The notes under the pieces were generated by a model. That model saw nothing but the letters and a program-made list of their open reading frames with translations. It was not told the DNA's origin and did no database searches. Positions 7,107 to 60,575 of a stretch of 64,000 nucleotides of DNA are shown in pieces (positions within the stretch are counted from its first letter, which is position 1; the number at the start of each line of letters is the position of its first letter). The stretch is from positions 186,001 through 250,000 of IMG/VR virus record IMGVR_UViG_3300021137_000001, one strand, 5' to 3'. The translations under genes were made by a program, and so were the position numbers.

Positions 7107-9419
7107 ATGGCAATTAATTCCAATCCTGAGATCGAAGAAATCATTGCGTCAGCTACAGAGTTAGCACGTGACTACAGGCATGAATACGTAACATTAGAGC
7201 ATTTGTTGATTGCATTAATTGAGTTTAGATCATTTAAAAAGTTACTAACTGAATACGGTGTTGATACTGCTCCGTTGCTAACAGACTTGTACGAGTATAC
7301 CGCACAGCAACATCACATTGTTGACTTAACAGACACAGAGAAAGAAATTGTTCCACAACGTACACACAGCTTAGAACGTGTGTTTAATCGTGCATTTACG
7401 CAGGTATTGTTTACAGCACGTGAGCAAATGGAGCCGGTTGATTTGTTCCTAAGCATCAGCCAAGAAACTAATAGTCACGCCGCTTACTTTATGCTTAAAT
7501 GGGGTATTGTTCGTAAAGACTTAGTTAAGTATTACGCTGAAAAATACATCGACAAAGGTGCTAAAGCGAAAGATCCAAAAATTAAGCAAGATTATGCAGA
7601 TGCAATTTTAGAAGAGTATTGCACAAACTTAAATGCAGTTGCTACTGATGGTAAGATTGATCCGGTTATTGGTCGCGAGTTCGAATTAGAAGAGATTGCG
7701 CAAGTACTTGCACGTCGACATAAATCAAACGTATTGATGATTGGTGATCCGGGTGTAGGTAAAACTGCTATTGCAGAAGGACTTGCATACAAAATCGTTA
7801 ACGGTGATGTACCAGCTTACTTGAAACCATACACAGTCTACAACTTAGAGATTGGTAGTTTACTTGCAGGTAGTAAATATCGCGGCGAGTTTGAAGAAAA
7901 ACTTAAAGATGTATTGGGTGCGCTTAATGAAAAGGGTAATGCAATTCTATTCATTGATGAAGCACATCAAATGCAAGGTGCTGGCGCAGGTAGTTCAAGC
8001 AGTGTAGACTTTGCTAATATGCTTAAACCAGCATTAGCCAAAGGTGGCATTAAAGTTATTGCAAGTACTACATACGAAGAATACACACAATCGTTTGAAA
8101 AAGATCGTGCATTAATGCGTCGTTTCTATAAACTAAACATTGATGAGCCAAGCCCAGAAGTAGCTAAAGATATTTTACTTGGACTTAAAGGACACTTTGA
8201 ACAATTTCATAATGGTGTAATTTTAGATGAAGCAATTGAACTTGCTGTTGATTTAAGTGTACGTTATCAAACAGACAAACGTTTACCTGATAAAGCCATT
8301 GACTTGATTGATATGAGTTGTGCTCGTCTTAAAATTAACAATCCAACTTGGGTTGTTGGTGCAGACGACATTATCGAAACACTTGCTAAAGCAACTAAGA
8401 TTCCAAAAGAGAACTTTGATAGCAAACATGCATCGACTTCATTGCCAAGTTTAGAAAGCAATATTAAAGATAAACTATACGGACAAGATAGTGCTGTTGA
8501 CGCAGTACTTGAGAAGATTTATGTTGCTAAGGCTGGTTTAAAAGCACACAACAAACCAATTGGTAACTTCTTATTCTTAGGCCCAACCGGTACAGGTAAA
8601 ACAGAGTTAGCTAAATTGCTTAGTGAAAACTTAGGTATGAAATTAATCCGCTTTGATATGAGTGAATACCAAGAGAAGCATGCAATGGCTAAACTTATTG
8701 GTGCTCCTCCGGGCTATGTTGGGTACGAAGATGGTAACTTAGGCGGCGGCTTGTTAATCAGTGAAGTCGAACGTAACCCACATTCAATTATCTTATTAGA
8801 TGAAATTGAAAAAGCTCACCCAGACATTAGTAACTTGTTGTTGCAAATTATGGACGAAGGCACAATTACTGGTAGTAACGGTAAGAAAGCGGATTGTCGC
8901 AATGCTATGCTAGTGCTAACAAGTAACTTAGGTTCAGCAGACAACGAGCAAAACAACATTGGCTTTGGGCGCGAGTTGCAAAAGTCAGGCGAAGATGATA
9001 GTGCTGTTAAAAAGTTCTTCAAACCAGAGTTTCGCAATCGTTTAGATGCAGTGGTTAAGTTTAACGGACTAGATAAGATTAGCATGAAGAAGATTGTTGT
9101 TAAATTCTTAAACGAGCTTAATGAATTACTAGCAGAGAAATCAATTAAACTACGTTCATCTGAAGCATTAGTCGATCACTTAGTCGAAGTTGGATTTGAC
9201 AGAGCAATGGGCGCACGTCCTTTAGCACGTAAGATTAGCGAGCTAATTAAAGTGCCATTAAGTAAAAAAATACTGTTTGAAAACATTAGTGTCGGTAGTA
9301 CAATTACGGCAGACTATAGCAACGAAGCAGTTGAGTTTATTGTTGTAGAACCAATTGATGAAATTGCATTATTGGAAAACAAAACAGTTGACGATAATGG
9401 CTTTATTATAGTAGAATAA
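7107..9419 (+). CDS. clpA: ClpA-type AAA+ chaperone
   Basis: Clp N-domain (HEYVTLEHLL), Walker A GDPGVGKT and GPTGTGKT, IGF ClpP-docking loop. Confidence 0.93.
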   Translation: MAINSNPEIEEIIASATELARDYRHEYVTLEHLLIALIEFRSFKKLLTEYGVDTAPLLTDLYEYTAQQHHIVDLTDTEKEIVPQRTHSLERVFNRAFTQVLFTAREQMEPVDLFLSISQETNSHAAYFMLKWGIVRKDLVKYYAEKYIDKGAKAKDPKIKQDYADAILEEYCTNLNAVATDGKIDPVIGREFELEEIAQVLARRHKSNVLMIGDPGVGKTAIAEGLAYKIVNGDVPAYLKPYTVYNLEIGSLLAGSKYRGEFEEKLKDVLGALNEKGNAILFIDEAHQMQGAGAGSSSSVDFANMLKPALAKGGIKVIASTTYEEYTQSFEKDRALMRRFYKLNIDEPSPEVAKDILLGLKGHFEQFHNGVILDEAIELAVDLSVRYQTDKRLPDKAIDLIDMSCARLKINNPTWVVGADDIIETLAKATKIPKENFDSKHASTSLPSLESNIKDKLYGQDSAVDAVLEKIYVAKAGLKAHNKPIGNFLFLGPTGTGKTELAKLLSENLGMKLIRFDMSEYQEKHAMAKLIGAPPGYVGYEDGNLGGGLLISEVERNPHSIILLDEIEKAHPDISNLLLQIMDEGTITGSNGKKADCRNAMLVLTSNLGSADNEQNNIGFGRELQKSGEDDSAVKKFFKPEFRNRLDAVVKFNGLDKISMKKIVVKFLNELNELLAEKSIKLRSSEALVDHLVEVGFDRAMGARPLARKISELIKVPLSKKILFENISVGSTITADYSNEAVEFIVVEPIDEIALLENKTVDDNGFIIVE

Positions 9420-50379: not shown

Positions 50380-50828
50380 TGTGGAAAAAAATTAAAGCAA
50401 CACTAGGTTTAAACAAAGCAGAGCTAGCAGAAGCCGAAGCCAAAGCGATGGCCGCGAGCGAAGCACGAACTAAACGTGCAGAAGCAAAAGCCGAAGCTAA
50501 AGCAGAGAAAGCCAAAGTTAAAGTGCTATCGGCTAAAGACGAAGCAACTGCAAACGGTCAGCCGTGGGTAGAAGTACTTGGCATTGAAGTAGACGAAGCT
50601 GATCCAGGACAAGGTGCGTTTGAACTTGACTGGAATGATGTGTTTATCACTAAATTGGTACGTGCAGGCTTCCAAGGTAAAACAGATCAAGACTTAGTCG
50701 ACAACTGGTTTAAAGCAGTATGTCGCAATGTAGTAACAGAAACATACGAACAAGATCAAGCCGACCCAGAAAAACGTGCAGAATCACGTAGACGTGACTT
50801 AGGTAACGGCAGAACAGAAGTATCTTGA
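50379..50828 (+). CDS. Hypothetical protein with Ala/Glu/Lys-rich N-terminus
   Basis: PWVEVL..GAFELDWN..VDNWF..VCRN. Confidence 0.75.
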   Translation: MWKKIKATLGLNKAELAEAEAKAMAASEARTKRAEAKAEAKAEKAKVKVLSAKDEATANGQPWVEVLGIEVDEADPGQGAFELDWNDVFITKLVRAGFQGKTDQDLVDNWFKAVCRNVVTETYEQDQADPEKRAESRRRDLGNGRTEVS

Positions 50829-50831
50829 CAT

Positions 50832-51413
50832 TTAACTGGCGTTGTTTATTAGGAAATTCTTATATTGTTCGTGTGTTCCAGCAAATCTTAAAATCATTTG
50901 ATAGTTAAGTTTATGCTCCGTGCACCAAAGTTTTAATTTAGAAGTAATGATAGTATTTCCACTGATAGTATCAACTATATTCCATGTTTGACTGTTTGAT
51001 CTACTTATGTTCTGTTTGTGAGTATTAGTTTTAGGCTTTGATACGGCTTCAATCACTGTTTGTGGGCGCGGTTTTCCTTTTTTGGACTCTGAAATTCGTT
51101 TACGTCCTTGCCAAGTAATTCCAGTGTCTCCGCCGGTTTCTCCGTTCTCTAACATTAGATTAGCCCACTCAGATGATTCTACAATTTTATTCTTTTCCGA
51201 AAAGTTTATAGCAAATTCTGTTAATTCTTTTTTGTTGTTAAATAGTTTGCACCAAATAGTTTCTATATTATATCCGTGCTTTTTTAAGTGATTATTCCAA
51301 TACACACCTGATCCGGTATATTTATATGGGTCTTGTTTTGTTTTACCAAAGTACTTTAATCCTGTTGCGGTATGTTGTTTAATATACAACCAAGTTGGGG
51401 TATAAATAGTCAT
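50832..51413 (-). mobile_element. Free-standing GIY-YIG (Seg-like) endonuclease
   Basis: WLYIKQH..GLKYFGKT, YTGSG, WANL..E.G..GG. Confidence 0.75.
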
Positions 51414-51480
51414 GCTGACATAGTTCCTTTATGTTAGAGTAGTTGGATGTTGTCGCATCGCGAACTACACTTCTATTTAT
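51411..51480 (-). promoter_or_regulatory. Conserved 5' leader element of GIY-YIG genes, copy 1
   Basis: ATAAATA, then GUAGUU-CGC-GAUG-N6-CAUC-C-AACUAC hairpin, then SD/AUG hairpin. Confidence 0.8.
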
Positions 51481-51555
51481 CCAAAATACTAGTTGACTTA
51501 ACCATAGTAATGTGCTATTATATACTATAATTAAGTGTTAAGGAAGTAATAAATC

Positions 51556-52578
51556 ATGCGTTATTTAATCGTAGATGCAGCAAACACATTCTTCAGAGCC
51601 AGACATAGTGCGCACAGACAAAGTGACACGTGGGATAAGCTGGGCTTTGCCATTCATGTTACCTTAGCTAGTATTAACAAAGCGTGGCGGGATCAAAAAG
51701 CTGACCATGTTATTATTTGTTTAGAAGGGCGTAGCTGGCGTAAAACTTTCTACACTCCTTACAAAGCGAATCGTGCTGTTGCCCGTGCCGCTAAGACAGA
51801 AGCAGAGCAAGAAGAAGAACAAATGTTTTGGGACGCTTTTGACGCTATGAAAACATTCCTAAGCGAAAAGACTAACTGCACAGTATTACAACATGGCGAG
51901 TTAGAAGCAGATGACTTAGTTGCTGGCTGGATACAAACACACCCAAATGACCATCACACTATTGTTTCTAGTGACACAGACTTCTATCAGTTACTAAGTG
52001 AAAATGTTAATCAGTATAATGGTATTAGTGATGAATTACATACTCTTACTGGTATTTTAGATAAACGTGGTAAACTTGTTATAGATAAGAAAACTAAATT
52101 ACCTAAAGTTATTCCAGATCCTAAGTATATTCTATTTGAAAAATGTGTACGCGGTGATCCAACTGACAACATCTTTAGTGCATATCCTGGTGTGCGGTCT
52201 AAGGGTACTAAGAACAAAGTTGGGTTAGAAGAAGCATATGGAGATAAAGATAAACAAGGATATGCGTGGAATAACTTAATGCTACAACGCTGGACTGATC
52301 ATAACGGTGTAGAACATAGAGTATTAGATGATTATAATCGCAATGTTACCCTAGTTGATTTAAATGCACAGCCTGCACAGTACAGAGTATTCATAGAAGA
52401 AACTATTAAGTCCAATGCAGTTGCATTAAATCGTCCAATGATTGGTGCACAGTTTCTTAAGTTCTGTGGCAAATATGATCTTGTTAAACTTAGCGATAAT
52501 GCAAGTGCAATGGCGCAATGGATGGGCGCAGGTTATCCACCAGAAGCAGTTACAATGTATCACTTAATTAATACGTAG
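51556..52578 (+). CDS. rnh: T4 RNase H-like 5'-3' exonuclease / flap nuclease
   Basis: LIVDAAN, YKANR, LEADD, SSDTDF, GDPTDNI..PGV. Confidence 0.9.
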   Translation: MRYLIVDAANTFFRARHSAHRQSDTWDKLGFAIHVTLASINKAWRDQKADHVIICLEGRSWRKTFYTPYKANRAVARAAKTEAEQEEEQMFWDAFDAMKTFLSEKTNCTVLQHGELEADDLVAGWIQTHPNDHHTIVSSDTDFYQLLSENVNQYNGISDELHTLTGILDKRGKLVIDKKTKLPKVIPDPKYILFEKCVRGDPTDNIFSAYPGVRSKGTKNKVGLEEAYGDKDKQGYAWNNLMLQRWTDHNGVEHRVLDDYNRNVTLVDLNAQPAQYRVFIEETIKSNAVALNRPMIGAQFLKFCGKYDLVKLSDNASAMAQWMGAGYPPEAVTMYHLINT

Positions 52579-52579
52579 A

Positions 52580-52744
52580 ATGAGCCAAGATACAGATTTT
52601 TCAGGATTCGGTGGATGGACGTGGATAGCATTAGCGGCACTCGATGGGTATTTTTTTCATTTTACGTATACTATAATGATAGTAAAGTTAGCATGGGCAC
52701 TTCTGTCTATAGGGTGGATGTTTTTTAGTTGGTTTTGGTTTTAA
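52580..52744 (+). CDS. Small membrane protein (54 aa, not in the ORF track)
   Basis: Trp/Phe-rich ORF filling the gap. Confidence 0.55.
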   Translation: MSQDTDFSGFGGWTWIALAALDGYFFHFTYTIMIVKLAWALLSIGWMFFSWFWF

Positions 52745-52757
52745 TGAAAGAAAATAA

Positions 52758-53348
52758 ATGATAGAAAAGTCACAAAAGTTTTTAGCGTTAGACTTAGAAT
52801 TAAACCAACCGAGTGGTAAGATCATTCAGGTTGGTATTGCCATTGGCAGTGCAAATGATAAGTTTGAAAATTACATTGTTAAGAAGTGGTATATCGATCC
52901 AAAAGAACCAATTAGTGACTTTATTATTGGCTTAACTGGCATTACCGACCACGATATTAGATTAAATTGCGTAAGTCACGAAACAGTTGCACGTGAGCTT
53001 AGTGAGCTAATTAAACAACATAACACTTGGATTAACCCAATTACTTGGGGTGGTGGAGATAGTAGAGAACTATTAGATGAGTTCTGCAAAAACTATGCCG
53101 ACTTCCCACACTTTGGCCGTCGTTGGATCGATACAAAGACTTGGTATACGTTTATGATGTTTGCACGTGGCAAGAATCCAAGCGGTGGACTTGCAAGTGC
53201 TATGGGTGCGTTTAAAATGCATTTTAAGGGCACTGCACACAGAGCAGATATCGACGCAGTTAATACACTTGCATTATTCTTCAAGCTAATTGATCGTCAA
53301 CGCAAGATGGAATATCTACTATCTGCCGCACATGATATTAAATCTTAG
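52758..53348 (+). CDS. DEDDh 3'-5' exonuclease (DnaQ-like)
   Basis: ALDLE, LTGIT, WG..D, IDTK, AHRADIDA. Confidence 0.88.
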   Translation: MIEKSQKFLALDLELNQPSGKIIQVGIAIGSANDKFENYIVKKWYIDPKEPISDFIIGLTGITDHDIRLNCVSHETVARELSELIKQHNTWINPITWGGGDSRELLDEFCKNYADFPHFGRRWIDTKTWYTFMMFARGKNPSGGLASAMGAFKMHFKGTAHRADIDAVNTLALFFKLIDRQRKMEYLLSAAHDIKS

Positions 53349-54015
53349 TGCGGCCCAATACAAAACCGTCAGCGGGACATTCTTTAGAAAATTTTTGAAT
53401 GTCCCCATTAGTCCACCATCGCTTTTCTTTGTTTACGGCAGCACCTAATGCGGCACCCACATTGTTGAATTTTAATCTACCTCGTATATACGAACTATCT
53501 GGAGCAGTCGGAGTAAAACATTGTTCCACGCCGTTGTTCCACCATTTATTATTCTTACGCTGTATACCCATTTCTATTTTTTGTTCTTCTGTGAACTTTT
53601 GTAAACCTTTATGTGCTCGTCCTATTTTTAATTTAGTAGCATCTGTCATCGGTAGACGCTGTAGATGTGCTGCCACTAACTTTGCTCGCTTACTGTCGGT
53701 GATTTTAACATTCGGTGCTCCGTCACCTCCATCTGTTAAATTAAGCAATATACCAGTGCCCAAATCCTTACGTCCATACCACGCAATTATTCTACGCTCA
53801 ATAGCAAACGCACCGATTTCAGTTAAATTAGTTTCAAGTATTGTGATATTCGATTTATCAGCAGGCACAGCAACACCTCGGGGGCCGTTACGATGCTGTT
53901 GATATGCTCTATTGTTCTTACCTTTGCCTATATAGTAAGGAGTGCCTGCTTTGGCTGTAGTGGAATCTTTATCTCGCAGGTATGCGTAGACGTAATAAAT
54001 AGTATTGCTGAACAT
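53338..54015 (-). mobile_element. Free-standing GIY-YIG endonuclease
   Basis: YYVYAYLR..PYYIGKG..R, E..II..YGRKD..LLNLTDGGDG, two WWxNG repeats. Confidence 0.8.
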
Positions 54016-54080
54016 ATAACCCTCCCAGGTTGTTTAGAGTAGTTGGATATTTCCGTATCGCGAACTACACTATTATTTAT
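54013..54080 (-). promoter_or_regulatory. Conserved 5' leader element of GIY-YIG genes, copy 2
   Basis: ATAAATA, then GUAGUU-CGC-GAUA-N6-UAUC-C-AACUAC hairpin. Confidence 0.8.
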
Positions 54081-54151
54081 CAAAAATACTTGCTCTTCTT
54101 CTTTTTTTCGTATATACTAACAGTTAAATCAACTAATAAAGGACATCAAAT

Positions 54152-54703
54152 ATGTTATGGACAATAGACAAAGAATTTCACTTCGAAATGGGGCATCGGG
54201 TATGGGCACAGAAATTAGATCGCCCAGATTTAAGTATTGAAACAGACTGCCAGTGCCGCCACCTCCACGGTCATTCCTATTCTATTAAGGTATTCCTAGG
54301 AGCAGATACCTTAGACCAAAGTGCTATGGTTACAGACTTTAAGAACTTAAACTTTATGAAAGAGTTTGTGGATAATGTATTAGATCATAAGTTTATGATT
54401 GATATTAATGATCCAAACTTTGAAATTATTACAAGTGTTAGCCCAAAGTTTACTGATAATATTGGAGAGTTTAAGAACTTTATAAACTTAGGTGAAGTAT
54501 TTGGCGTAGGTATTCCTGGTTTAGTAGACGCAGATAGACAATTACATATGAACAGCTTCGTATTAGTAGACTTTGTTCCTACAAGCGAAAACATCTGTAA
54601 GTATTTGAAACTGTATGCTCAAGAGCGTATTGGCGATTTTGCCACAGTAACAGCCGTTGAACTTTGGGAAACTAAAAAATCACATTGTAGATACGAGGAT
54701 TAA
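54152..54703 (+). CDS. queD: 6-carboxytetrahydropterin synthase
   Basis: FEMGHR, CRHLHGHSY, VTDF, LDH, PTSEN, WET. Confidence 0.9.
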   Translation: MLWTIDKEFHFEMGHRVWAQKLDRPDLSIETDCQCRHLHGHSYSIKVFLGADTLDQSAMVTDFKNLNFMKEFVDNVLDHKFMIDINDPNFEIITSVSPKFTDNIGEFKNFINLGEVFGVGIPGLVDADRQLHMNSFVLVDFVPTSENICKYLKLYAQERIGDFATVTAVELWETKKSHCRYED

Positions 54704-54786
54704 AATGTCAGCATTAAATGTTAGAGTAGATCGTATTGACTGGTGGGAAACTCCCAAGTCACGTAGTACTTTTATTAGGGGTTAAT

Positions 54787-55149
54787 ATGAACACAACTGC
54801 CTTTATCTTACTAGCATTATTTGGCGTTAAGCACTTTATTGCCGACTTCTTAATGCAATCTGAATACATGCTACGTGAGAAGGGTACATATGGTGCTGAT
54901 GGTGGTATTCATCATGCAGCGGTACATGCGGCATTTACTTTCTTAATTCTTGTGTTCTTTGCGCATAGTGCTAACGATATTATTATGCTTGCACTAGCAG
55001 ATGGTGTTATACATTATCACATCGACTGGGTTAAGCAAAAACTAAATAAAGGCCTCAGCCCTGCTGATCGCATGTTTTGGGTATGGATGGGCGCAGATCA
55101 AGGGTTACATTACTTAACATATATTGGAATTATCTATGCAGTTGCTTAA
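54787..55149 (+). CDS. DUF3307-like membrane protein
   Basis: KHFIADF..Q, H...H, HYHID..K, DQGLH. Confidence 0.75.
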   Translation: MNTTAFILLALFGVKHFIADFLMQSEYMLREKGTYGADGGIHHAAVHAAFTFLILVFFAHSANDIIMLALADGVIHYHIDWVKQKLNKGLSPADRMFWVWMGADQGLHYLTYIGIIYAVA

Positions 55150-55216
55150 ACAAAAAACAAAAGAATGCCCACTTACAGCTACTTGCCCTGAAGTGGCTAC
55201 TTGCGGAGGACCAGTT

Positions 55217-55723
55217 ATGACATTACTAGCAAGATCAGTGGTTAAGAATAAGTGCTGGATTGTTGAACAAGATGGTACTAAGATTGCAACTATTCATGCA
55301 AACGAACAAGGTGTAACTTTAGTACAGAATACTACCCGTGAACAGTTTCCTAATCTTAAAACACTTAGTGATAGATATAATATCATTATTGACAAATCCA
55401 AGCCAGCTAAAGTAGCAAAAGAAACGCATAACGTTCATGGATATCCTTGCGATAATAAACCACAGAATGAACTATGGGATTTGCATCATAAACTACCAGT
55501 GTTTACCAAAGGTAGTAAAAGCAAAAGTTTCTTCTGTGCTGGATATTATATTGTACAGTTTAACAACGGATGGGTTAAAAGTTATTGTCCTAAGTTTATT
55601 ACACTTAATAGATATCCGTATCAAGGACCATTTAAAACAGTCGAAGAACGAAATGCACAGTTAAAAATAGCAAACGGAGGTTACGATGGAGAATCAACTA
55701 AGTCTACACTTAAAGGCATTTAA
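55217..55723 (+). CDS. Hypothetical protein
   Basis: GGAGGA SD before ATG 55217; SKSFFCAGYY..CPK. Confidence 0.7.
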   Translation: MTLLARSVVKNKCWIVEQDGTKIATIHANEQGVTLVQNTTREQFPNLKTLSDRYNIIIDKSKPAKVAKETHNVHGYPCDNKPQNELWDLHHKLPVFTKGSKSKSFFCAGYYIVQFNNGWVKSYCPKFITLNRYPYQGPFKTVEERNAQLKIANGGYDGESTKSTLKGI

Positions 55724-55904
55724 CAATCGGGTTAAAGTAATGAATCAAACTAACAGCAAGGACTTAACATTATCTGCGCTGGATGCACGTAATCTACATA
55801 ATGATTTGTTTGAATTGCTTACACAGATTGCGGCGCTGACTGCAATTAAAGAAGCAGAAGAAAGTACAGTAGTAAACGTAGAGATGGATGGTGGTGGATT
55901 TTAG
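55686..55904 (+). CDS. Hypothetical protein
   Basis: GGAGG SD; ends MDGGGF. Confidence 0.75.
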   Translation: MENQLSLHLKAFNNRVKVMNQTNSKDLTLSALDARNLHNDLFELLTQIAALTAIKEAEESTVVNVEMDGGGF

Positions 55905-55954
55905 TATAAAGTATGTAGTTAATTGGCATAAATAACTGTAAGTAGGAATTATTA

Positions 55955-56242
55955 ATGTCACGCCCAAAACCAACAGTTCTATTAGAGCATGTAAACAAAA
56001 CAAACTATAAAAGCGACCAGATACTAGATTCAGAAGGTATCTGGGCTGTATTCTTTGATGCACAACCAATCAATCTAAAAACACAAAACATACTTGTGGC
56101 ATATCCTGGACCAAAGTATAAGAAAGTTTCATTTAGTAACAAAGGACATGCAATCAACCTTGCTAAGAAACTCAATGCACTGTTTAAGTCAGATAAGTTT
56201 TCAGTTGTGCTATTAACCGGTGGAACCCAAATCTACCCGTAA
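55955..56242 (+). CDS. Hypothetical protein
   Basis: Follows ATAAATA; MSRPKP, YPGPKYKK. Confidence 0.75.
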   Translation: MSRPKPTVLLEHVNKTNYKSDQILDSEGIWAVFFDAQPINLKTQNILVAYPGPKYKKVSFSNKGHAINLAKKLNALFKSDKFSVVLLTGGTQIYP

Positions 56243-56959
56243 TTTACAATTGTTACCATGCCATCTAGTATACATAGCAATAGCACAATCTCTCCCACAA
56301 TACTCGCATATCTTCCTAGGATGTACTATTCCTAATTTTGCTCGACGCATCTTTTCTTTAGTGTCAGTCGATCGCTGTATATTAGCAGATAGCATAGTTT
56401 CAGAAGTTTTCTTTTTTGTAGACATCGACGGGGTTCTAGTTTTGCCAAACTCTGATAATCTTTTTCTAGTTTCTAGCGAATGAGTTTTGCCAAGCATAGG
56501 GCCTATTCTTCCTTTAAGTTTTTGTTTTTGCTCATCGGTTAATTTTGTTCCTTTTTTCTGTAAAGACATTTTGGCCCGAGTCTCGTCGGAATGTTTCTTA
56601 CCATAAAAGTGATTTCCGTGTCCGATCATTTTATTTTTCAGATACTTACTACGTTCTTGTTTTATAATCGTATAAATTCTAGAATTTATACATCTACCAT
56701 TATGATCATTTGCTAATCTTAAGGCAGCATTTACCATTTTTGCTTTATTTTCGCCTGTTAACATTTTAGTTAGTAATAAGTGACATACAAAATGTTCGCG
56801 TGGCATTAGTTTAACAATATTATCTTTCTTATTTGTGCCGCCTAAACTTTTAGGAAGAATATGATGTTTTTCTATATAAATCGATGATTCGAGTTCTCTT
56901 ATTTGTGCCGCTTCTATAATATTAAAATAATATCGAGTATATTTATTGTGTAAATACAT
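56213..56959 (-). mobile_element. Free-standing HNH homing endonuclease with NUMOD3 repeats
   Basis: EKHHILPKSLGG..N...L..REHFVCH; GKKHSDET and GKTHSLET repeats; C-terminal CEYC. Confidence 0.85.
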
Positions 56960-57012
56960 TATGTTTAATCAACCTTTAATTAGTAATACATACTTATTTA
57001 TACAAAATAATC

Positions 57013-57369
57013 ATGGCACTCATTAAGTCACGTGCCGAATCTCCGCAGTCAATTTGGCAAGATAAGTTTTATCAAATAATCCCATACGCAGTAAATCCAA
57101 GTATGTGGTGGTATAATCCAACTAATCACAATAGTCTACGTCTTACGCAAAATGCGTATCTCACAATGCGTAAGCACATTAGATTTTATAAATTCAAATT
57201 ATTACACGAAATACGACCCAAGACCTTTGTACAGTTAGAACGCTACTTTGCAGAGCCTTACTATGTACAAAATCGTTCCACTATCCATATTGTCAGTGAC
57301 CGTGATGCTATGATGTTAGGGTTACATGCCAACGATTTACAACAATATTTAGATAACCAAAGTCTGTAA
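57013..57369 (+). CDS. Hypothetical protein
   Basis: WWYNP..SLRLT, PYY. Confidence 0.7.
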   Translation: MALIKSRAESPQSIWQDKFYQIIPYAVNPSMWWYNPTNHNSLRLTQNAYLTMRKHIRFYKFKLLHEIRPKTFVQLERYFAEPYYVQNRSTIHIVSDRDAMMLGLHANDLQQYLDNQSL

Positions 57370-57469
57370 AGTTTTGTAGGAATTTGTAACAAGCATTGAC
57401 TTTTTGGTATATTTCATGTATAGTTACTATAAATACTGCTTTATACAGTATACAACGGGGTAGGAAATT

Positions 57470-57805
57470 ATGAAGAATATTTTATTAGTAGCATTGATTG
57501 CAAGTATCGGTATTTCATCTTTTGCTAATGCTGAAGGACGTGAAGGTGGACGAGGCGGTTATTATCGCGGTGGTTATTATCGCGGGGGCAGTGGTATGGA
57601 ATGGATCGCTCCATTGGCAATTGGTGGATTGATTGGTTATGAACTTAATCGTCAACCAACTGTAACTGCACAGCGACCACCTATAATTTATCAACAAGCA
57701 CCAGCAATAGTGAATGTTCAACCTAACCAACCAATCTATCAATACCAGAACATTTATGACACGAATTGTGCTTGTTATCATCAAGTTTTAGTTCAAATCA
57801 ATTAA
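57470..57805 (+). CDS. Small secreted or membrane protein with GGYYR repeat
   Basis: Signal peptide, GGYYRGGYYRGG, hydrophobic segment. Confidence 0.7.
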   Translation: MKNILLVALIASIGISSFANAEGREGGRGGYYRGGYYRGGSGMEWIAPLAIGGLIGYELNRQPTVTAQRPPIIYQQAPAIVNVQPNQPIYQYQNIYDTNCACYHQVLVQIN

Positions 57806-57817
57806 TAAAATGATTGG

Positions 57818-57846
57818 TTGACTTTTCCTTGTTTTGACTGTATAAT
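57818..57846 (+). promoter_or_regulatory. Sigma70-type early promoter
   Basis: TTGACT-N17-TATAAT. Confidence 0.8.
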
Positions 57847-57879
57847 GTTACACATACACTAACAACAAGGAAGAAATAA

Positions 57880-58272
57880 ATGGCTTATATTAGCGCACAA
57901 GATGTAAAAGCAATACGCGACGAACTTAAAGTAACTTTTCCTAACTTCAAGTTTGGTGTACGTAAAGGTTATAGTGGCAGTTCAGTTGATGTTACTATTA
58001 AGCAGGGTCCAGTTGACTTTGCTGAAGTATTTAAAGGTGAACGTAATGCTTATGCACAAATTAATGAATTTCATTTGTACTTTTACGGTAAGCACGAAGC
58101 GTTCTTTGAACAAGTATTAAACATTATCAAGACTGCTCCAGCTAATGCAGGTGGACGTGCTTGGTTTGATAAAAGCGATGCGCAAACAGATTATTTCTCA
58201 ATTGCGTATTACATTCATTTAAACGTGGGCGAATGGAATGCTCCATACGCTTGCACCAAGGAGTTTGCATAA
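57880..58272 (+). CDS. LPD29-like early protein
   Basis: IRDELK..FP..KFGVR...DKSDAQTDYF...YY pattern. Confidence 0.55.
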   Translation: MAYISAQDVKAIRDELKVTFPNFKFGVRKGYSGSSVDVTIKQGPVDFAEVFKGERNAYAQINEFHLYFYGKHEAFFEQVLNIIKTAPANAGGRAWFDKSDAQTDYFSIAYYIHLNVGEWNAPYACTKEFA

Positions 58273-58448
58273 TGTCATCAGCTTATTTCGTAAATTATCA
58301 CAAGAGTCGTATTTCTATTTTGTCAGATGACGATTTAGAAGTTGCATTTGAAACATATAAAACATTACAGGCACGTTCAGTTAACGATGAGATTGTTACT
58401 GAATTGCTTGCCCAAGAATTAGACAACAGAGAAAAGGAATTAGTATAA
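58272..58448 (+). CDS. Small hypothetical protein
   Basis: TAATG coupling, AAGGAG SD. Confidence 0.65.
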   Translation: MSSAYFVNYHKSRISILSDDDLEVAFETYKTLQARSVNDEIVTELLAQELDNREKELV

Positions 58449-58612
58449 TGAATACAAGAATACAACGGTTGGTACTTGCAGTCTTATTAATCATCGGTTA
58501 CGTAGCAATTGGTTACTGTGGTGAGGTTGGTAAGGTGATTAATGGTCTACTTGGTAACTTTGCAGTAGGTTGGTTGGTTATGGACATTGCAAAAGCAATC
58601 ATTAAAGATTAA
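58448..58612 (+). CDS. Small membrane protein (54 aa, not in the ORF track)
   Basis: TAATG coupling, AAGGA SD, two hydrophobic segments. Confidence 0.6.
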   Translation: MNTRIQRLVLAVLLIIGYVAIGYCGEVGKVINGLLGNFAVGWLVMDIAKAIIKD

Positions 58613-58619
58613 ACAGTAC

Positions 58620-58648
58620 TTGACAAGAACATAGTTTGGTAGTATAAT
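58620..58648 (+). promoter_or_regulatory. Consensus sigma70 promoter
   Basis: TTGACA-N17-TATAAT. Confidence 0.85.
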
Positions 58649-58690
58649 ATGTTTTGTTACGTTAAGTTAATAATTAATTAGGAGTTACAA

Positions 58691-59788
58691 ATGGCAACAA
58701 TTACTGAAAATAGAACTGTTACTGCAACAGAAGCAAAGGCGGCAATTTTACGTTGCTTTACAAAACAACGCCCACTATTTTTATGGGGTCCCCCAGGCAT
58801 TGGTAAGAGTGAATTAGTAGAAGGCATTACTAAAGATATGGGCGGGTTGATGATTGACTTGCGCTTGGCGCAGATGGACCCGACGGATATACGTGGTATT
58901 CCTTACTTTAATAAAGACTTGGGTGTGATGGATTGGGCTCCCCCAATTGACTTGCCCGATGAAGCAACAGCGGCGCAATATCCGATTGTTGTATTGTTTT
59001 TAGATGAGATGAACAGTGCGGCGCCAAGTGTGCAAGCAGTTGCGTATCAACTTATTTTAAACAGACGTGTTGGTAAGTATAAACTTCCCGACAACGTTGT
59101 AATGGTTGCGGCAGGTAACAGAGAAGGTGACAAGGGTGTTAGCTACAGAATGCCTGCTCCTTTAGCAAACAGATTTGTGCATTTGGAAATGCGTGTTGAC
59201 TTTCAAAGCTGGTTACAATGGGCTACTGAAAATCGCATTCACAAAGATGTGATTGGTTACTGTTCTTTTGCTAAACAAGATTTGTACGACTTTGATCCGA
59301 AAAGTTCAAGTCGTAGTTTTGCAACACCTCGTAGCTGGACTTTTGTTAGCGAGTTGTTAGACGATGGCATTGCTGATAGTACAACTACTGATATGGTAGC
59401 TGGTACAATTGGTGAAGGTACTGCTGTTAAGTTTATGGCGCATAGAAAGATTGCAGGACAAATGCCGTTGCCAGAAGACATTTTAAGCGGTAAGATTACA
59501 GAGCTTAAGATTAAAGAAATTAGTGCAATGTATTCTTTAACTATTAGTATGTGTTACGAGTTGAAAGATGCGTATGCTAAGTTTGGCAAAGAAGATAATG
59601 CTAAATGGCACACTATGGCAGATTACTTCTTTAAGTTTATGATGGAGAACTTTACTACTGAAGTAACGGTAATGGGGGCCAGGGTCGCACTTACGACATA
59701 CAACCTTCCGTTTATTCCTAACAAGTTGAAAAACTTTGATGAGTTTCACAAAAAGTTTGGTCGTTACGTGGTTGCAGCTGTAGCATAG
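58691..59788 (+). CDS. MoxR-like AAA+ ATPase
   Basis: WGPPGIGKS, DIRGIP, LFLDEMN, AAGNR, LANRF, TPRSW. Confidence 0.88.
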   Translation: MATITENRTVTATEAKAAILRCFTKQRPLFLWGPPGIGKSELVEGITKDMGGLMIDLRLAQMDPTDIRGIPYFNKDLGVMDWAPPIDLPDEATAAQYPIVVLFLDEMNSAAPSVQAVAYQLILNRRVGKYKLPDNVVMVAAGNREGDKGVSYRMPAPLANRFVHLEMRVDFQSWLQWATENRIHKDVIGYCSFAKQDLYDFDPKSSSRSFATPRSWTFVSELLDDGIADSTTTDMVAGTIGEGTAVKFMAHRKIAGQMPLPEDILSGKITELKIKEISAMYSLTISMCYELKDAYAKFGKEDNAKWHTMADYFFKFMMENFTTEVTVMGARVALTTYNLPFIPNKLKNFDEFHKKFGRYVVAAVA

Positions 59789-59798
59789 TAGCATAAAG

Positions 59799-59823
59799 AT
59801 AATAGGGGCTTAGGTCCCTATTA
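59799..59823. terminator. Probable bidirectional terminator hairpin
   Basis: AATAGGGGC-TTAG-GTCCCTATT between convergent genes. Confidence 0.65.
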
Positions 59824-60477
59824 TTTTGGCTCACGTTTCTTATATGGTCCAACAATTTTACCCTTACGATGCGACACACGACCTTTTAATGTAGCGGAAC
59901 GTTTAGCATTAGATTCAGCTGTTTGTGCTTTACCAGTAAGTGCGTCACTAATCTTTTTACATGTTTCATCGGAACGATTATTGTGTATTGCCACCATCTT
60001 TAACTTCTGTTCATCCGACATTGGCTTGCCTTTATTGTGTGCTTCTCTCCCAACTAATTTAGCCGAGGCCGTTGCCATACTTGCATTAGTATCTTTAGTT
60101 AATCCTTTATTCCAAGATGGATAATTGCGAGGTTGGTTTAATCCTTTATTCCACGGAGCAACACCGGCGGTGCTAAACTTACCATCACCATTGTGTTGAT
60201 TGTAGCTTAAAGGGTCGTTTTTAGCGTCTACAAGCGTTAGTAATGCGGTCTCTAATGCTAACATATCAACAGCGTGGCCAATGCACAGCACAGTTCGAAT
60301 CCAGTTGGTTTGGTTGGATTCAACCAACGGTTTGACTATACGACTACTACAAATATAACCATCTGCGGGGTTACATCCGTGCTTAGTGCGAGATCCGATA
60401 TACCAACGTCCGGTCGATAATTCTGTCCACTTATAAACATAAGCATAGGTAGGTGAGGTTAAATACATTGCTGACAT
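59821..60477 (-). mobile_element. Free-standing GIY-YIG endonuclease with NUMOD3-like repeats
   Basis: YVYKW...WYIGSR, YICSS, SYNQHNG, PWNKG/SWNKG/HNKG repeats. Confidence 0.8.
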
Positions 60478-60535
60478 AGTCCTTTATGTTAGAGTAGTCG
60501 GATAGTGAGATATCGTGGACTACACTTCTATTTAT
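60466..60535 (-). promoter_or_regulatory. Conserved 5' leader element of GIY-YIG genes, copy 3
   Basis: ATAAATA, then GUAGUC-CAC-GAUA-N6-UAUC-C-GACUAC hairpin, then ACAUA-AAGGAC-UAUGU hairpin. Confidence 0.8.
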
Positions 60536-60546
60536 CATTTCTCCAA

Positions 60547-60575
60547 TTGACTTCCCCAAACTTCTATGTTATAAT
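60547..60575 (+). promoter_or_regulatory. Sigma70-type promoter
   Basis: TTGACT-N17-TATAAT. Confidence 0.8.

Follow-up and report, generated by a model that had tools for sequence, protein, structure and literature searches.

Homing endonucleases are abundant selfish genes in phages and act as weapons in phage-phage competition, yet how their potentially toxic expression is restrained is known only for a few T4 examples, all of which are sense-strand hairpins or autorepression. In T4 (I-TevI, I-TevII, I-TevIII, segB and mobE) a hairpin in the sense RNA sequesters the Shine-Dalgarno sequence (SD) and is bypassed by a late promoter located inside it, so that late transcripts lack the 5′ arm (PMC2988022). 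FinP of F-like plasmids is a short cis-antisense RNA with two stem-loops and a 3′ tail, fully complementary to the 5′ UTR of traJ mRNA, with the complementary stem-loops and the ribosome binding site (RBS) region as the target and translational inhibition as the outcome (PMC3105414). In IS10, face-to-face promoters at the 5′ end of the transposase gene yield RNA-IN and RNA-OUT, the latter a stable single-hairpin antisense RNA with imperfections in the stem that covers the RBS and gives copy number-dependent inhibition. CfrI of cyanophage S-PM2 (~225 nt, of unknown function) links a homing endonuclease gene to psbA, runs antisense to the endonuclease gene and is co-expressed with it (PMC2984593, citing Millard et al. 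2010). PeSLs of T4-like phages are small repeated cassettes (stem-loop terminator plus sigma-70-like promoter) that travel with accessory genes and mediate modular shuffling (PMC2839356, PMC4122927).

The window analysed here (64,000 nt; positions 186,001 to 250,000 of IMG/VR record IMGVR_UViG_3300021137_000001) contains three minus-strand copies of a repeat, each at the start of an endonuclease gene (Table 1). The initial annotation described these as a covarying ~70-nt RNA leader shared by three divergent GIY-YIG endonuclease genes, and this observation was confirmed. A degenerate pattern allowing up to 3 mismatches found exactly these three copies in the window and 0 in 100 dinucleotide shuffles. 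The compensatory changes in the first hairpin (HP1; HP1′ when read on the opposite strand), GUAGUU/AACUAC versus GUAGUC/GACUAC and GAUG/CAUC versus GAUA/UAUC, are present, as are the C-R-C/Y internal loop, the 6-nt loop and a second hairpin (HP2; HP2′ on the opposite strand) with the SD in its loop in copies 1 and 3. The two HNH genes in the window lack the element, as the annotation stated. Its GIY-YIG assignment holds best for copy 1, where the N-domain matches the I-TevI catalytic domain (1mk0; Z 8.5, rmsd 2.9 Å over 86 of 97 residues, followed by other GIY-YIG domains); Foldseek alone did not recognise this protein, while a second structural aligner did. Copies 2 and 3 gave only sub-threshold GIY-YIG profile hits, together with homing endonuclease PHROGs and relatives with weak GIY-YIG/SegE hits.

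Table 1 Features of the three copies of the repeat in the 64-kb window (transcripts, start sites and promoters are predicted from sequence).
Copy	Coordinates	Strand	Feature	Remarks
1	51474..51479	-	TAAATA late-promoter-like motif facing the endonuclease gene	Genome-wide promoter motif; predicted sense start G at 51468, spacing calibrated on TAAATA-N5-ATG leaderless genes
1	51436..51471	+	Hairpin HP1′ (36-nt core)	3′ terminator-like hairpin of the predicted antisense RNA, followed by UUCUAUUUAU
1	51415..51437	+	Hairpin HP2′ (9 bp including G·U pairs)	Loop GUUCC holds the complement of the gene's SD
1	51403..51408	+	Second TAAATA motif, inside codons 2-4 of the endonuclease gene	Predicted antisense start G at 51414
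1	51414..51480	+	Predicted ~67-nt antisense RNA	Folds at -18.9 kcal/mol, z -2.9; transcript inferred
1	50832..51413	-	Endonuclease gene (193 aa)	N-domain with I-TevI GIY-YIG fold
1	51493..51521	+	Outward sigma-70-like promoter (TTGACT-17-TATTAT, with TG) inside the inserted cassette	Faces the RNase H-like gene at 51556
1	50837..51540	.	Approximate extent of the inserted cassette relative to empty sites	Insertion splits the resident TTGACA-N17-TATAAT promoter; a contig of one sequencing run (X16) joins 50835 to the empty-site sequence
2	53994..54081	+	Whole module: antisense TAAATA 53996-54001; predicted antisense RNA 54007-54080; HP2′ 54008-54037; HP1′ core 54036-54071; sense TAAATA 54074-54079 (- strand)	Antisense RNA also covers the AUG (54013-54015)
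2	53338..54015	-	Endonuclease gene (225 aa)	
3	60458..60536	+	Whole module: antisense TAAATA 60460-60465; predicted antisense RNA 60470-60535; HP2′ 60471-60492; HP1′ core 60491-60526; sense TAAATA 60529-60534 (- strand)	
3	59821..60477	-	Endonuclease gene with NUMOD3 motifs	Family pattern suggests start at the second in-frame ATG, 60466-60468
3	60547..60575	+	Outward sigma-70-like promoter (TTGACT-17-TATAAT, with TG)	Just beyond the U-rich tail

The repeat is widespread in uncultured aquatic jumbo phages: the 329-kb genome containing the window holds nine copies, five other jumbo-phage genomes hold 2-13 each, and viral and metagenome contigs hold hundreds. No match was found in 50,697 cultured-phage records (megablast with 11 kb, blastn with the element) or in Rfam, with no gathering-level hit across the window and only chance hits in E-value mode for 51380-51500 (E 5 and 8.8). 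The model found no copy in 404 kb of related RNase H loci other than in loci identical to the window. Three copies alone could not prove covariation, but larger sets do, both hairpins covarying strongly (96-97% of cells paired against 77-79% after shuffling). Three collection scans gave 179 distinct cores, and in a 121-sequence alignment 96.0% of cells were paired versus 76.9% in shuffles, with 405 versus 102 double-sided changes, none of 500 shuffles reaching the observed values, and 28-50% in slid controls. In a pattern-independent set of 46 copies from six genomes 96.9% were paired, with HP2′ 100% paired. The sequences are related by descent and these counts do not represent independent events.

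In both hairpins the non-Watson-Crick pairs are A·C when read on the gene strand and G·U when read on the opposite strand, and the selected fold is therefore antisense to the gene. On the gene strand, HP1 positions left free by the search patterns gave 55 A·C versus 2 G·U, the central R/Y position being G-C in 125 cases, A-U in 24, A·C in 30 and G·U in 0, while HP2 gave 107 versus 17; in the pattern-independent set the counts were 64 G·U versus 2 A·C in antisense reading. Read on the sense strand the same pairs drop to 91.5% paired, with 30 G·U against 127 in antisense reading, and the antisense RNAs have predicted folding energies of -16 to -19 kcal/mol, against -11 for the sense leaders. Mutation bias is an unlikely cause of the A·C excess, as the wobble state is the commonest state at one HP2 pair, both transition types are seen and copies lie on both genome strands. 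A K-turn reading of the 3x1 internal loop was rejected because the G-A after the bulge forms Watson-Crick pairs and the central R/Y position covaries as a pair, and an autorepressor operator (as for I-TevI) was rejected because unrelated proteins share the element and the stems covary rather than keep their sequence.

The ~80-bp cassette is bounded by two inward-facing TAAATA motifs, matching the genome's gp55-type late-promoter motif. ATAAATA occurs 126 times in the genome, 76 of these in the 8.75% that is intergenic and 65 within 100 nt upstream of a same-strand gene, and precedes the portal and tail fiber genes; TAAATA is the rarest hexamer of its composition inside genes, and the genome encodes a late sigma factor (phrog_12791, 4e-79). 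The sense motif lies 0-5 nt (mostly 2) upstream of HP1 and about 55 nt before the AUG, outside HP2. The inner motif, seen as TATTTA on the gene strand, was not part of any search pattern but occurs 25-50 nt after HP1 in 91% of 216 distinct elements, and at 26-30 nt in 166 of them, in all three reading frames relative to the start codon (91, 24 and 15 cases for the three commonest arrangements), so that unrelated proteins all begin MxIY, MYL or MIFI. An SD triplet lies in the HP2 loop in 176 of 187 elements, and the antisense RNA is complementary to this region by construction. In 86% of elements 6-8 of the 10 nt after HP1′ are U, although this tail is partly forced by the sense TAAATA, and HP1′ is AT-rich, has an A·A mismatch and two bulged G near or within the stem, and was not called by a simple terminator scan.

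The interpretation in the initial annotation was only partly supported. A portable regulatory module attached to divergent homing endonuclease genes, with real covariation and not in Rfam, was borne out, while a structure acting primarily in the mRNA leader was not supported. GIY-YIG specificity was also not supported, as family-wide the element precedes HNH, HNH_3, HNH_5 and other genes as well, and identical or near-identical leaders sit on HNH and GIY-YIG genes, including an identical 58-nt leader on an HNH gene and on a GIY-YIG gene. Sequestration of the RBS as in T4, to which the annotation referred, was not supported, given an SD in the loop, sense stems carrying A·C mismatches and a late-promoter motif outside the hairpin. 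The alternative of a mobility or end signal was likewise not supported, since in copy 1 the element lies about 60-140 bp inside the inserted DNA, the right end of which carries a sigma-70-like promoter.

The cassette most likely encodes a small antisense RNA that holds the nuclease in check, a reading we consider somewhat more probable than not. In this view, the repeat is a portable expression-control cassette at the 5′ end of free-standing homing endonuclease genes in a clade of jumbo phages related to Atu_ph07 and the Serratia BF group. The outer TAAATA would start the endonuclease mRNA and the inner one, in the first codons of the gene, a ~65-nt antisense RNA, with a 5′ hairpin displaying an anti-SD loop and a 3′ hairpin plus U-rich tail acting as terminator. 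This RNA, fully complementary to the ~55-nt mRNA leader, would pair with it, probably starting by loop-loop contact, and block ribosome binding or trigger cleavage, thus limiting endonuclease synthesis late in infection. The analysis itself establishes the anatomy, the covariation, the strand on which the fold is selected, conservation of the inner TAAATA at the nucleotide level, the promoter-motif statistics, the association with endonuclease genes and the position inside the inserted DNA, while the existence of the RNA, firing of both motifs, termination at the U tail and repression by pairing are inferred. Start sites are extrapolated from T4 and from leaderless genes, and both promoters would be of the same late class, so timing alone does not explain the regulation. 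A search of sequencing runs listed no RNA run, and a wider search gave freshwater DNA runs and a single RNA-labelled wastewater run, whose unstranded contigs touch only the gene body (51120-51270) and carry no information on strand or ends. If this reading holds, it identifies a new, very widespread structured RNA family and a different control logic, an antisense RNA gene packaged with the nuclease gene and exchanged among unrelated GIY-YIG and HNH nucleases; wobble-pair asymmetry also assigned the functional strand from sequence alone and overturned the obvious mRNA leader reading.

An alternative that is possible but less likely is an insulator for the host strand, in which the hairpin and U tail terminate transcription of surrounding phage genes running antisense through the inserted endonuclease gene, and the inner TAAATA and sigma-70-like promoter restart transcription of the next host gene, repairing the damage of insertion as PeSL cassettes (PMC2839356) or the embedded promoters of T4 seg/mob genes (PMC2988022) do, with any antisense effect incidental. 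About 65% of elements have a divergent neighbor (101, versus 55 co-oriented), so that the antisense direction leads into a host gene, and a strong outward sigma-70-like promoter (at least 10 of 12 positions) follows the tail in 53 of 213 elements, including copies 1 and 3, versus 14 of 213 on the control strand; copy 1 split a resident promoter and carries a replacement. However, the module is kept in the 35% with a co-oriented neighbor, where an outward promoter would be useless or harmful, only a quarter carry the sigma-70-like promoter, and a promoter ~60 nt before its own terminator makes a short RNA rather than a restart. HP2′ covariation, the anti-SD loop, the conserved GCUG start and the tight promoter-hairpin spacing also remain unexplained by this model.

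Folding in the sense leader, with HP1 as a 5′ stabiliser or protein-binding site and HP2 presenting or sequestering the RBS, would fit the predicted sense start (G at core position 4, invariant in 179 of 179 cores), which puts HP1 at the very 5′ end of the mRNA, the fully Watson-Crick HP1 of copies 1 and 2, able to fold on either strand, and the leader hairpins of T4 endonuclease genes (PMC2988022). It appears very unlikely given the wobble asymmetry and the SD in the loop, and does not explain the TATTTA conserved in three frames. A DNA-level signal, either a strand-specific single-stranded hairpin or a shared homology block promoting recombination, cassette swapping or mobility, is also unlikely. 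Identical leaders on unrelated nucleases do show recombination within or at the edge of the module, there are several copies per genome, G·T wobble is tolerated in DNA hairpins and PeSLs are thought to mediate such shuffling (PMC2839356), but homology-driven exchange needs no base-pairing, yet pairing is maintained through many stem identities, and homing by double-strand-break repair needs no end signal. The module is not at the ends of the insert, and the promoter motifs, U tail and anti-SD loop are left unexplained. A more speculative and improbable possibility is that the antisense RNA acts in trans as well as in cis. The lower stem of HP1 is nearly identical among copies in a genome and among different phages, and each RNA could also pair with leaders of other endonuclease mRNAs, giving copy number-dependent 'multicopy inhibition' of the whole endonuclease load and, during co-infection, silencing of a competitor phage's related endonucleases, an RNA-based immunity against homing endonuclease attack.

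Compared with the described systems, the predicted RNA resembles FinP in its two stem-loops, 3′ tail and full complementarity to the target leader, but there is no sequence relation, the target is a homing endonuclease gene in a lytic phage, the promoters are gp55-type late motifs, and no FinO/ProQ-domain gene was found in the genome (a search for RegA also gave no hit, but is uninformative as its control gave no hit anywhere). The face-to-face arrangement of predicted promoters at the 5′ end of a mobile element's nuclease gene recalls IS10, although RNA-OUT is a single hairpin, belongs to a transposase and uses host sigma-70 promoters. CfrI shares the antisense orientation to a homing endonuclease gene, but is not a repeated portable 5′ cassette with covarying hairpins. 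As in T4, a late-promoter-driven endonuclease gene would be limited through RNA structure around the RBS, but here the SD is in a loop, the fold is selected on the other strand and the promoter motif lies upstream of both hairpins. In PeSLs a G/C-rich stem-loop lies within or overlaps the sigma-70 early promoter and the cassettes flank ORFans, while here the hairpins sit between two late-type motifs at an endonuclease start codon, and the sigma-70-like promoter, where present (about 25%), lies 5-15 nt beyond the hairpin rather than around it.

The three minus-strand repeats described in the initial annotation are real. Each has the same layout, with a TAAATA motif, a 2-nt spacer, a 36-nt hairpin (HP1), a second hairpin (HP2) with the Shine-Dalgarno (SD) sequence in its loop, YCAGC and then the start codon, and a degenerate pattern found exactly three matches in the window and none in 100 shuffles. 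Rfam searches returned nothing, either at gathering thresholds or in the permissive mode on the element. The interpretation offered in the initial annotation was partly supported: the element is portable, but a fold in the sense leader is disfavoured and the element is not an end signal.

The window is bases 186001-250000 of a 329,321-bp IMG/VR virus record with direct terminal repeats (genome G000), the DNA polymerase of which is 45-52% identical to those of Sinorhizobium phage Phosso and Agrobacterium phage Atu_ph07 and about 44-45% identical to those of the Serratia BF, Erwinia and Yersinia jumbo phages. The genome encodes a late sigma factor of the T4 gp55 type (phrog_12791, E 4e-79), and DNA runs that hold the sequence are freshwater and lake metagenomes. 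In the window the endonuclease genes are inserted among a 6-pyruvoyl-tetrahydropterin synthase (QueD-like) gene, an RNase H/5'-3' exonuclease gene and an RNase T-like exonuclease gene; the QueD-like gene hints at 7-deazaguanine base modification in this phage.

Three pattern scans of the viral contig collection returned 79, at least 120 and at least 119 loci, and the hits of a metagenome scan included some marine assemblies. A covariance model found nine copies in G000 and 4, 13, 5, 2 and 13 copies in five other 317-372-kb phage genomes, but none in 404 kb of related DNA around the RNase H-like gene, apart from loci identical to the window. None of the cultured-phage records searched matched. 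The element also occurs on three short contigs (1.7-3.0 kb; loci L363, L364 and L365) binned into MAGs of Haliscomenobacter sp., an uncultured Bacteroidetes bacterium and a Terrimicrobiaceae bacterium, probably mis-binned phage DNA and at most a weak hint about the host. Metagenome contigs from other family members (runs X10 and X14) break or switch exactly at the edges of the HP1 core, which therefore behaves as a dispersed repeat that fragments assemblies.

Each scan left some positions unconstrained, allowing a fair test of covariation. With the inner stem free, 109 of 113 distinct cores form 4 of 4 pairs, using more than 15 different stems, and with five outer pairs free, 80 of 102 form 5 of 5. 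On a 121-sequence alignment 96.0% of cells pair, against 76.9% after shuffling, with 405 double-sided changes against 102; none of 500 shuffles reaches the observed values and slid controls give 28-50%. A pattern-independent set of 46 copies from six genomes gives 96.9% paired (HP2 helix, 100%; HP1 core, 99.2%).

The central result concerns the strand that folds. Non-Watson-Crick pairs are almost all A·C when read on the gene strand, which means G·U on the complementary strand. At HP1 positions that the patterns left free on both sides, the count is 55 A·C to 2 G·U. The middle of what the initial annotation took for a 3x1 internal loop is G-C in 125 cores, A-U in 24, A·C in 30 and G·U in none, and is therefore a base pair on the other strand, flanked by two invariant bulged G. 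For HP2, which no pattern constrained, a strand-neutral stem finder gave 107 A·C to 17 G·U, and one HP2 pair has U·G (antisense reading) as its commonest state. In the pattern-independent set the tally in antisense reading is 64 G·U to 2 A·C, leaving out the outermost position, which does not behave as a pair. Although these counts are on related sequences and are not independent events, the asymmetry recurs at many positions, in many stem backgrounds and in copies on both genome strands. Read on the sense strand, the same pairs drop to 91.5% paired. The predicted antisense RNAs of the three window copies fold at -18.9, -16.1 and -18.4 kcal/mol, against about -11 for the sense leaders. The selected structure is therefore on the strand antisense to the endonuclease gene.

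From its distribution in the sequence, TAAATA behaves as the late-promoter motif of the phage (the T4 late consensus is TATAAATA). ATAAATA occurs 126 times in the genome, 76 of these in the 8.75% that is intergenic and 65 within 100 nt upstream of a same-strand gene. Spacing to the ATG is typically 19-25 nt, while a class of thirteen genes, none in the window, has TAAATA followed by exactly 5 nt and then ATG, implying a start 6 nt after the motif and leaderless mRNAs from late-type promoters; the three of these genes that were checked are homing-endonuclease genes. Perfect TATAAATA precedes the portal gene and a tail-fibre/virion gene. Inside genes, TAAATA is the rarest of the 15 hexamers of its composition and its complement TATTTA is the second rarest of the complement set.

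TATTTA sits just after the start codon of the endonuclease genes. It is present in 91% of 216 distinct elements, mostly 26-30 nt from HP1, and in all three reading frames (ATGnnTATTTA, 91; ATGTATTTA, 24; ATGnTATTTA, 15), with the result that unrelated proteins all begin MxIY, MYL or MIFI. In the whole genome only 10 of 394 genes have TATTTA in their first 16 nt, and 8 of those are endonuclease genes. This is a nucleotide-level signal which, read on the other strand, is a TAAATA motif facing the outer one.

The inner motif would start an RNA at the G of the conserved GCUG. This RNA would first form HP2', with a stem of 9 bp in copies 1 and 3, as GCUG pairs with UUAG through a G·U pair, and a 5-7-nt loop carrying CCU/UCC, the complement of the SD; an SD triplet lies in the HP2 loop in 176 of 187 elements. 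HP1' follows, and then a tail with 6-8 U in 10 nt in 86% of elements. The predicted RNA is complementary to the entire ~55-nt leader predicted from the outer motif, and in copy 2 also covers the AUG.

Of 202 ORFs downstream of the cassette, falling into 103 clusters, a motif classification gave about 134 GIY-YIG-like, 42 HNH-like and 26 other. A Pfam scan of 40 representatives matched NUMOD3 (18 members), HNH (8), HNH_5 (6), HNH_3 (2), GIY-YIG (8) and SegE_GIY-YIG (7), and PHROGs gave homing-endonuclease families. An identical 58-nt leader precedes an HNH gene and a GIY-YIG gene, and pairs differing by only 1-5 nt are common. In two pairs of loci (L178 versus L153; L132 versus L135), leaders that are identical or differ by 1 nt over 58 nt are fused to HNH and to GIY-YIG genes with the join right after ATGTATTTA, direct evidence of recent recombination at the edge of the cassette. 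The cassette is thus exchanged among unrelated nucleases, and the junction lies at TATTTA. The copy-1 protein has an I-TevI-like catalytic fold by structure comparison (Z 8.5). As the initial annotation noted, the HNH genes of the window lack the hairpins, although one of them still has TATAAATA, a 35-nt spacer and then ATGTATTTA. G000 carries at least 17 endonuclease-like genes (the nine cassette copies and eight others) with three different 5' architectures, namely the predicted antisense cassette, a short 19-36-nt leader, and leaderless; three genes without the hairpins still keep TAAATA, ATG and TATTTA in that order. Two cassettes lie back to back about 290 bp apart, driving divergent endonuclease genes, and their predicted antisense RNAs would converge on each other. 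A terminator-like hairpin (9 pairs, then CTTTATGCTA) overlaps the stop codon of the copy-3 gene, suggesting that the cassette gene has its own 3' terminator.

Relatives with an empty site have only 3-35 nt between the upstream gene and the RNase H-like gene, and this gap holds a TTGACA-N17-TATAAT promoter with a -35 box overlapping the upstream stop codon. A DNA contig from metagenome run X16 shows the same empty junction. In the window about 700 bp are inserted after TTGACATTTAAC, within the spacer of this resident promoter, comprising the endonuclease gene, the cassette and an outward TTGACT-17-TATTAT promoter that replaces the split one. The stop codon of the endonuclease gene lies in the retained flank. 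The element is therefore internal to the insert and is not an end signal. Other relatives carry a different, co-oriented 650-760-bp insert at the same site, so this is an insertion hot spot. Family-wide, a strong outward sigma-70-like promoter follows the tail in 53 of 213 elements, against 14 of 213 on the control strand, and the upstream neighbour is divergent in 101 cases and co-oriented in 55.

Coordinates of features in the window and in the whole genome (G000)
Sequence	Position	Strand	Feature
Window	50826-50840 and 51493-51555		Copy-1 insertion in the spacer of the resident promoter (loci L288, L298, L300, L302, L307, L320)
Window	50832-50834		Stop codon of the copy-1 endonuclease gene
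Window	50835		Empty-site junction in a contig of run X16
Window	51414	+	Predicted antisense RNA start, copy 1
Window	51433-51471 and 54034-54080		Breaks or switches of contigs from runs X10 and X14 at HP1 core edges
Window	51556-52578	+	RNase H/5'-3' exonuclease gene
Window	52758-53348	+	RNase T-like exonuclease gene
Window	54007	+	Predicted antisense RNA start, copy 2
Window	54152-54703	+	QueD-like gene
Window	56213-56959 (G000 242213-242959)		HNH gene without the hairpins, retaining both motifs
Window	59799-59824	-	Terminator-like hairpin, copy 3
Window	60470	+	Predicted antisense RNA start, copy 3
G000	69119-69200	+	Cassette of back-to-back pair
G000	69487-69566	-	Cassette of back-to-back pair
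G000	73855-73868		TAAATA-N5-ATG
G000	119172-119185		TAAATA-N5-ATG (gene at 119183, homing endonuclease)
G000	133573-133586		TAAATA-N5-ATG (gene at 133584, homing endonuclease)
G000	323518-323531		TAAATA-N5-ATG (gene at 323529, homing endonuclease)
G000	8528-9241		Endonuclease-like gene
G000	85003-85659		Endonuclease-like gene
G000	119183-119794		Endonuclease-like gene
G000	133584-134201		Endonuclease-like gene
G000	141978-142628		Endonuclease-like gene
G000	262786-263568		Endonuclease-like gene
G000	323529-324278		Endonuclease-like gene

The evidence best fits a portable antisense-RNA governor of homing-endonuclease expression, a reading that appears somewhat more likely than not. The layout, the covariation and the strand on which pairing is selected come from the sequence comparisons themselves, whereas the existence, the ends and the effect of the RNA are inferred, in the absence of transcript data. 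The main rival, which seems unlikely, is that the hairpin plus tail insulates host-strand transcription and that the outward promoters repair polarity, in line with T4 precedents (PMC2988022) and PeSL cassettes (PMC2839356, PMC4122927). However, this does not explain the third of copies with co-oriented neighbours, the placement of a promoter immediately before its own terminator, or the HP2' covariation with an anti-SD loop. The sense-leader model is disfavoured by the wobble asymmetry, and a DNA-level recombination role may coexist with the RNA role, but does not explain why pairing is maintained.

The only comparable phage case found is CfrI of cyanophage S-PM2, a 225-nt antisense RNA of unknown function over a homing-endonuclease gene (PMC2984593). 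The predicted two-hairpin, U-tailed, 5'-UTR-complementary design is that of FinP acting on traJ (PMC3105414). It also recalls the face-to-face pIN/pOUT arrangement of IS10.
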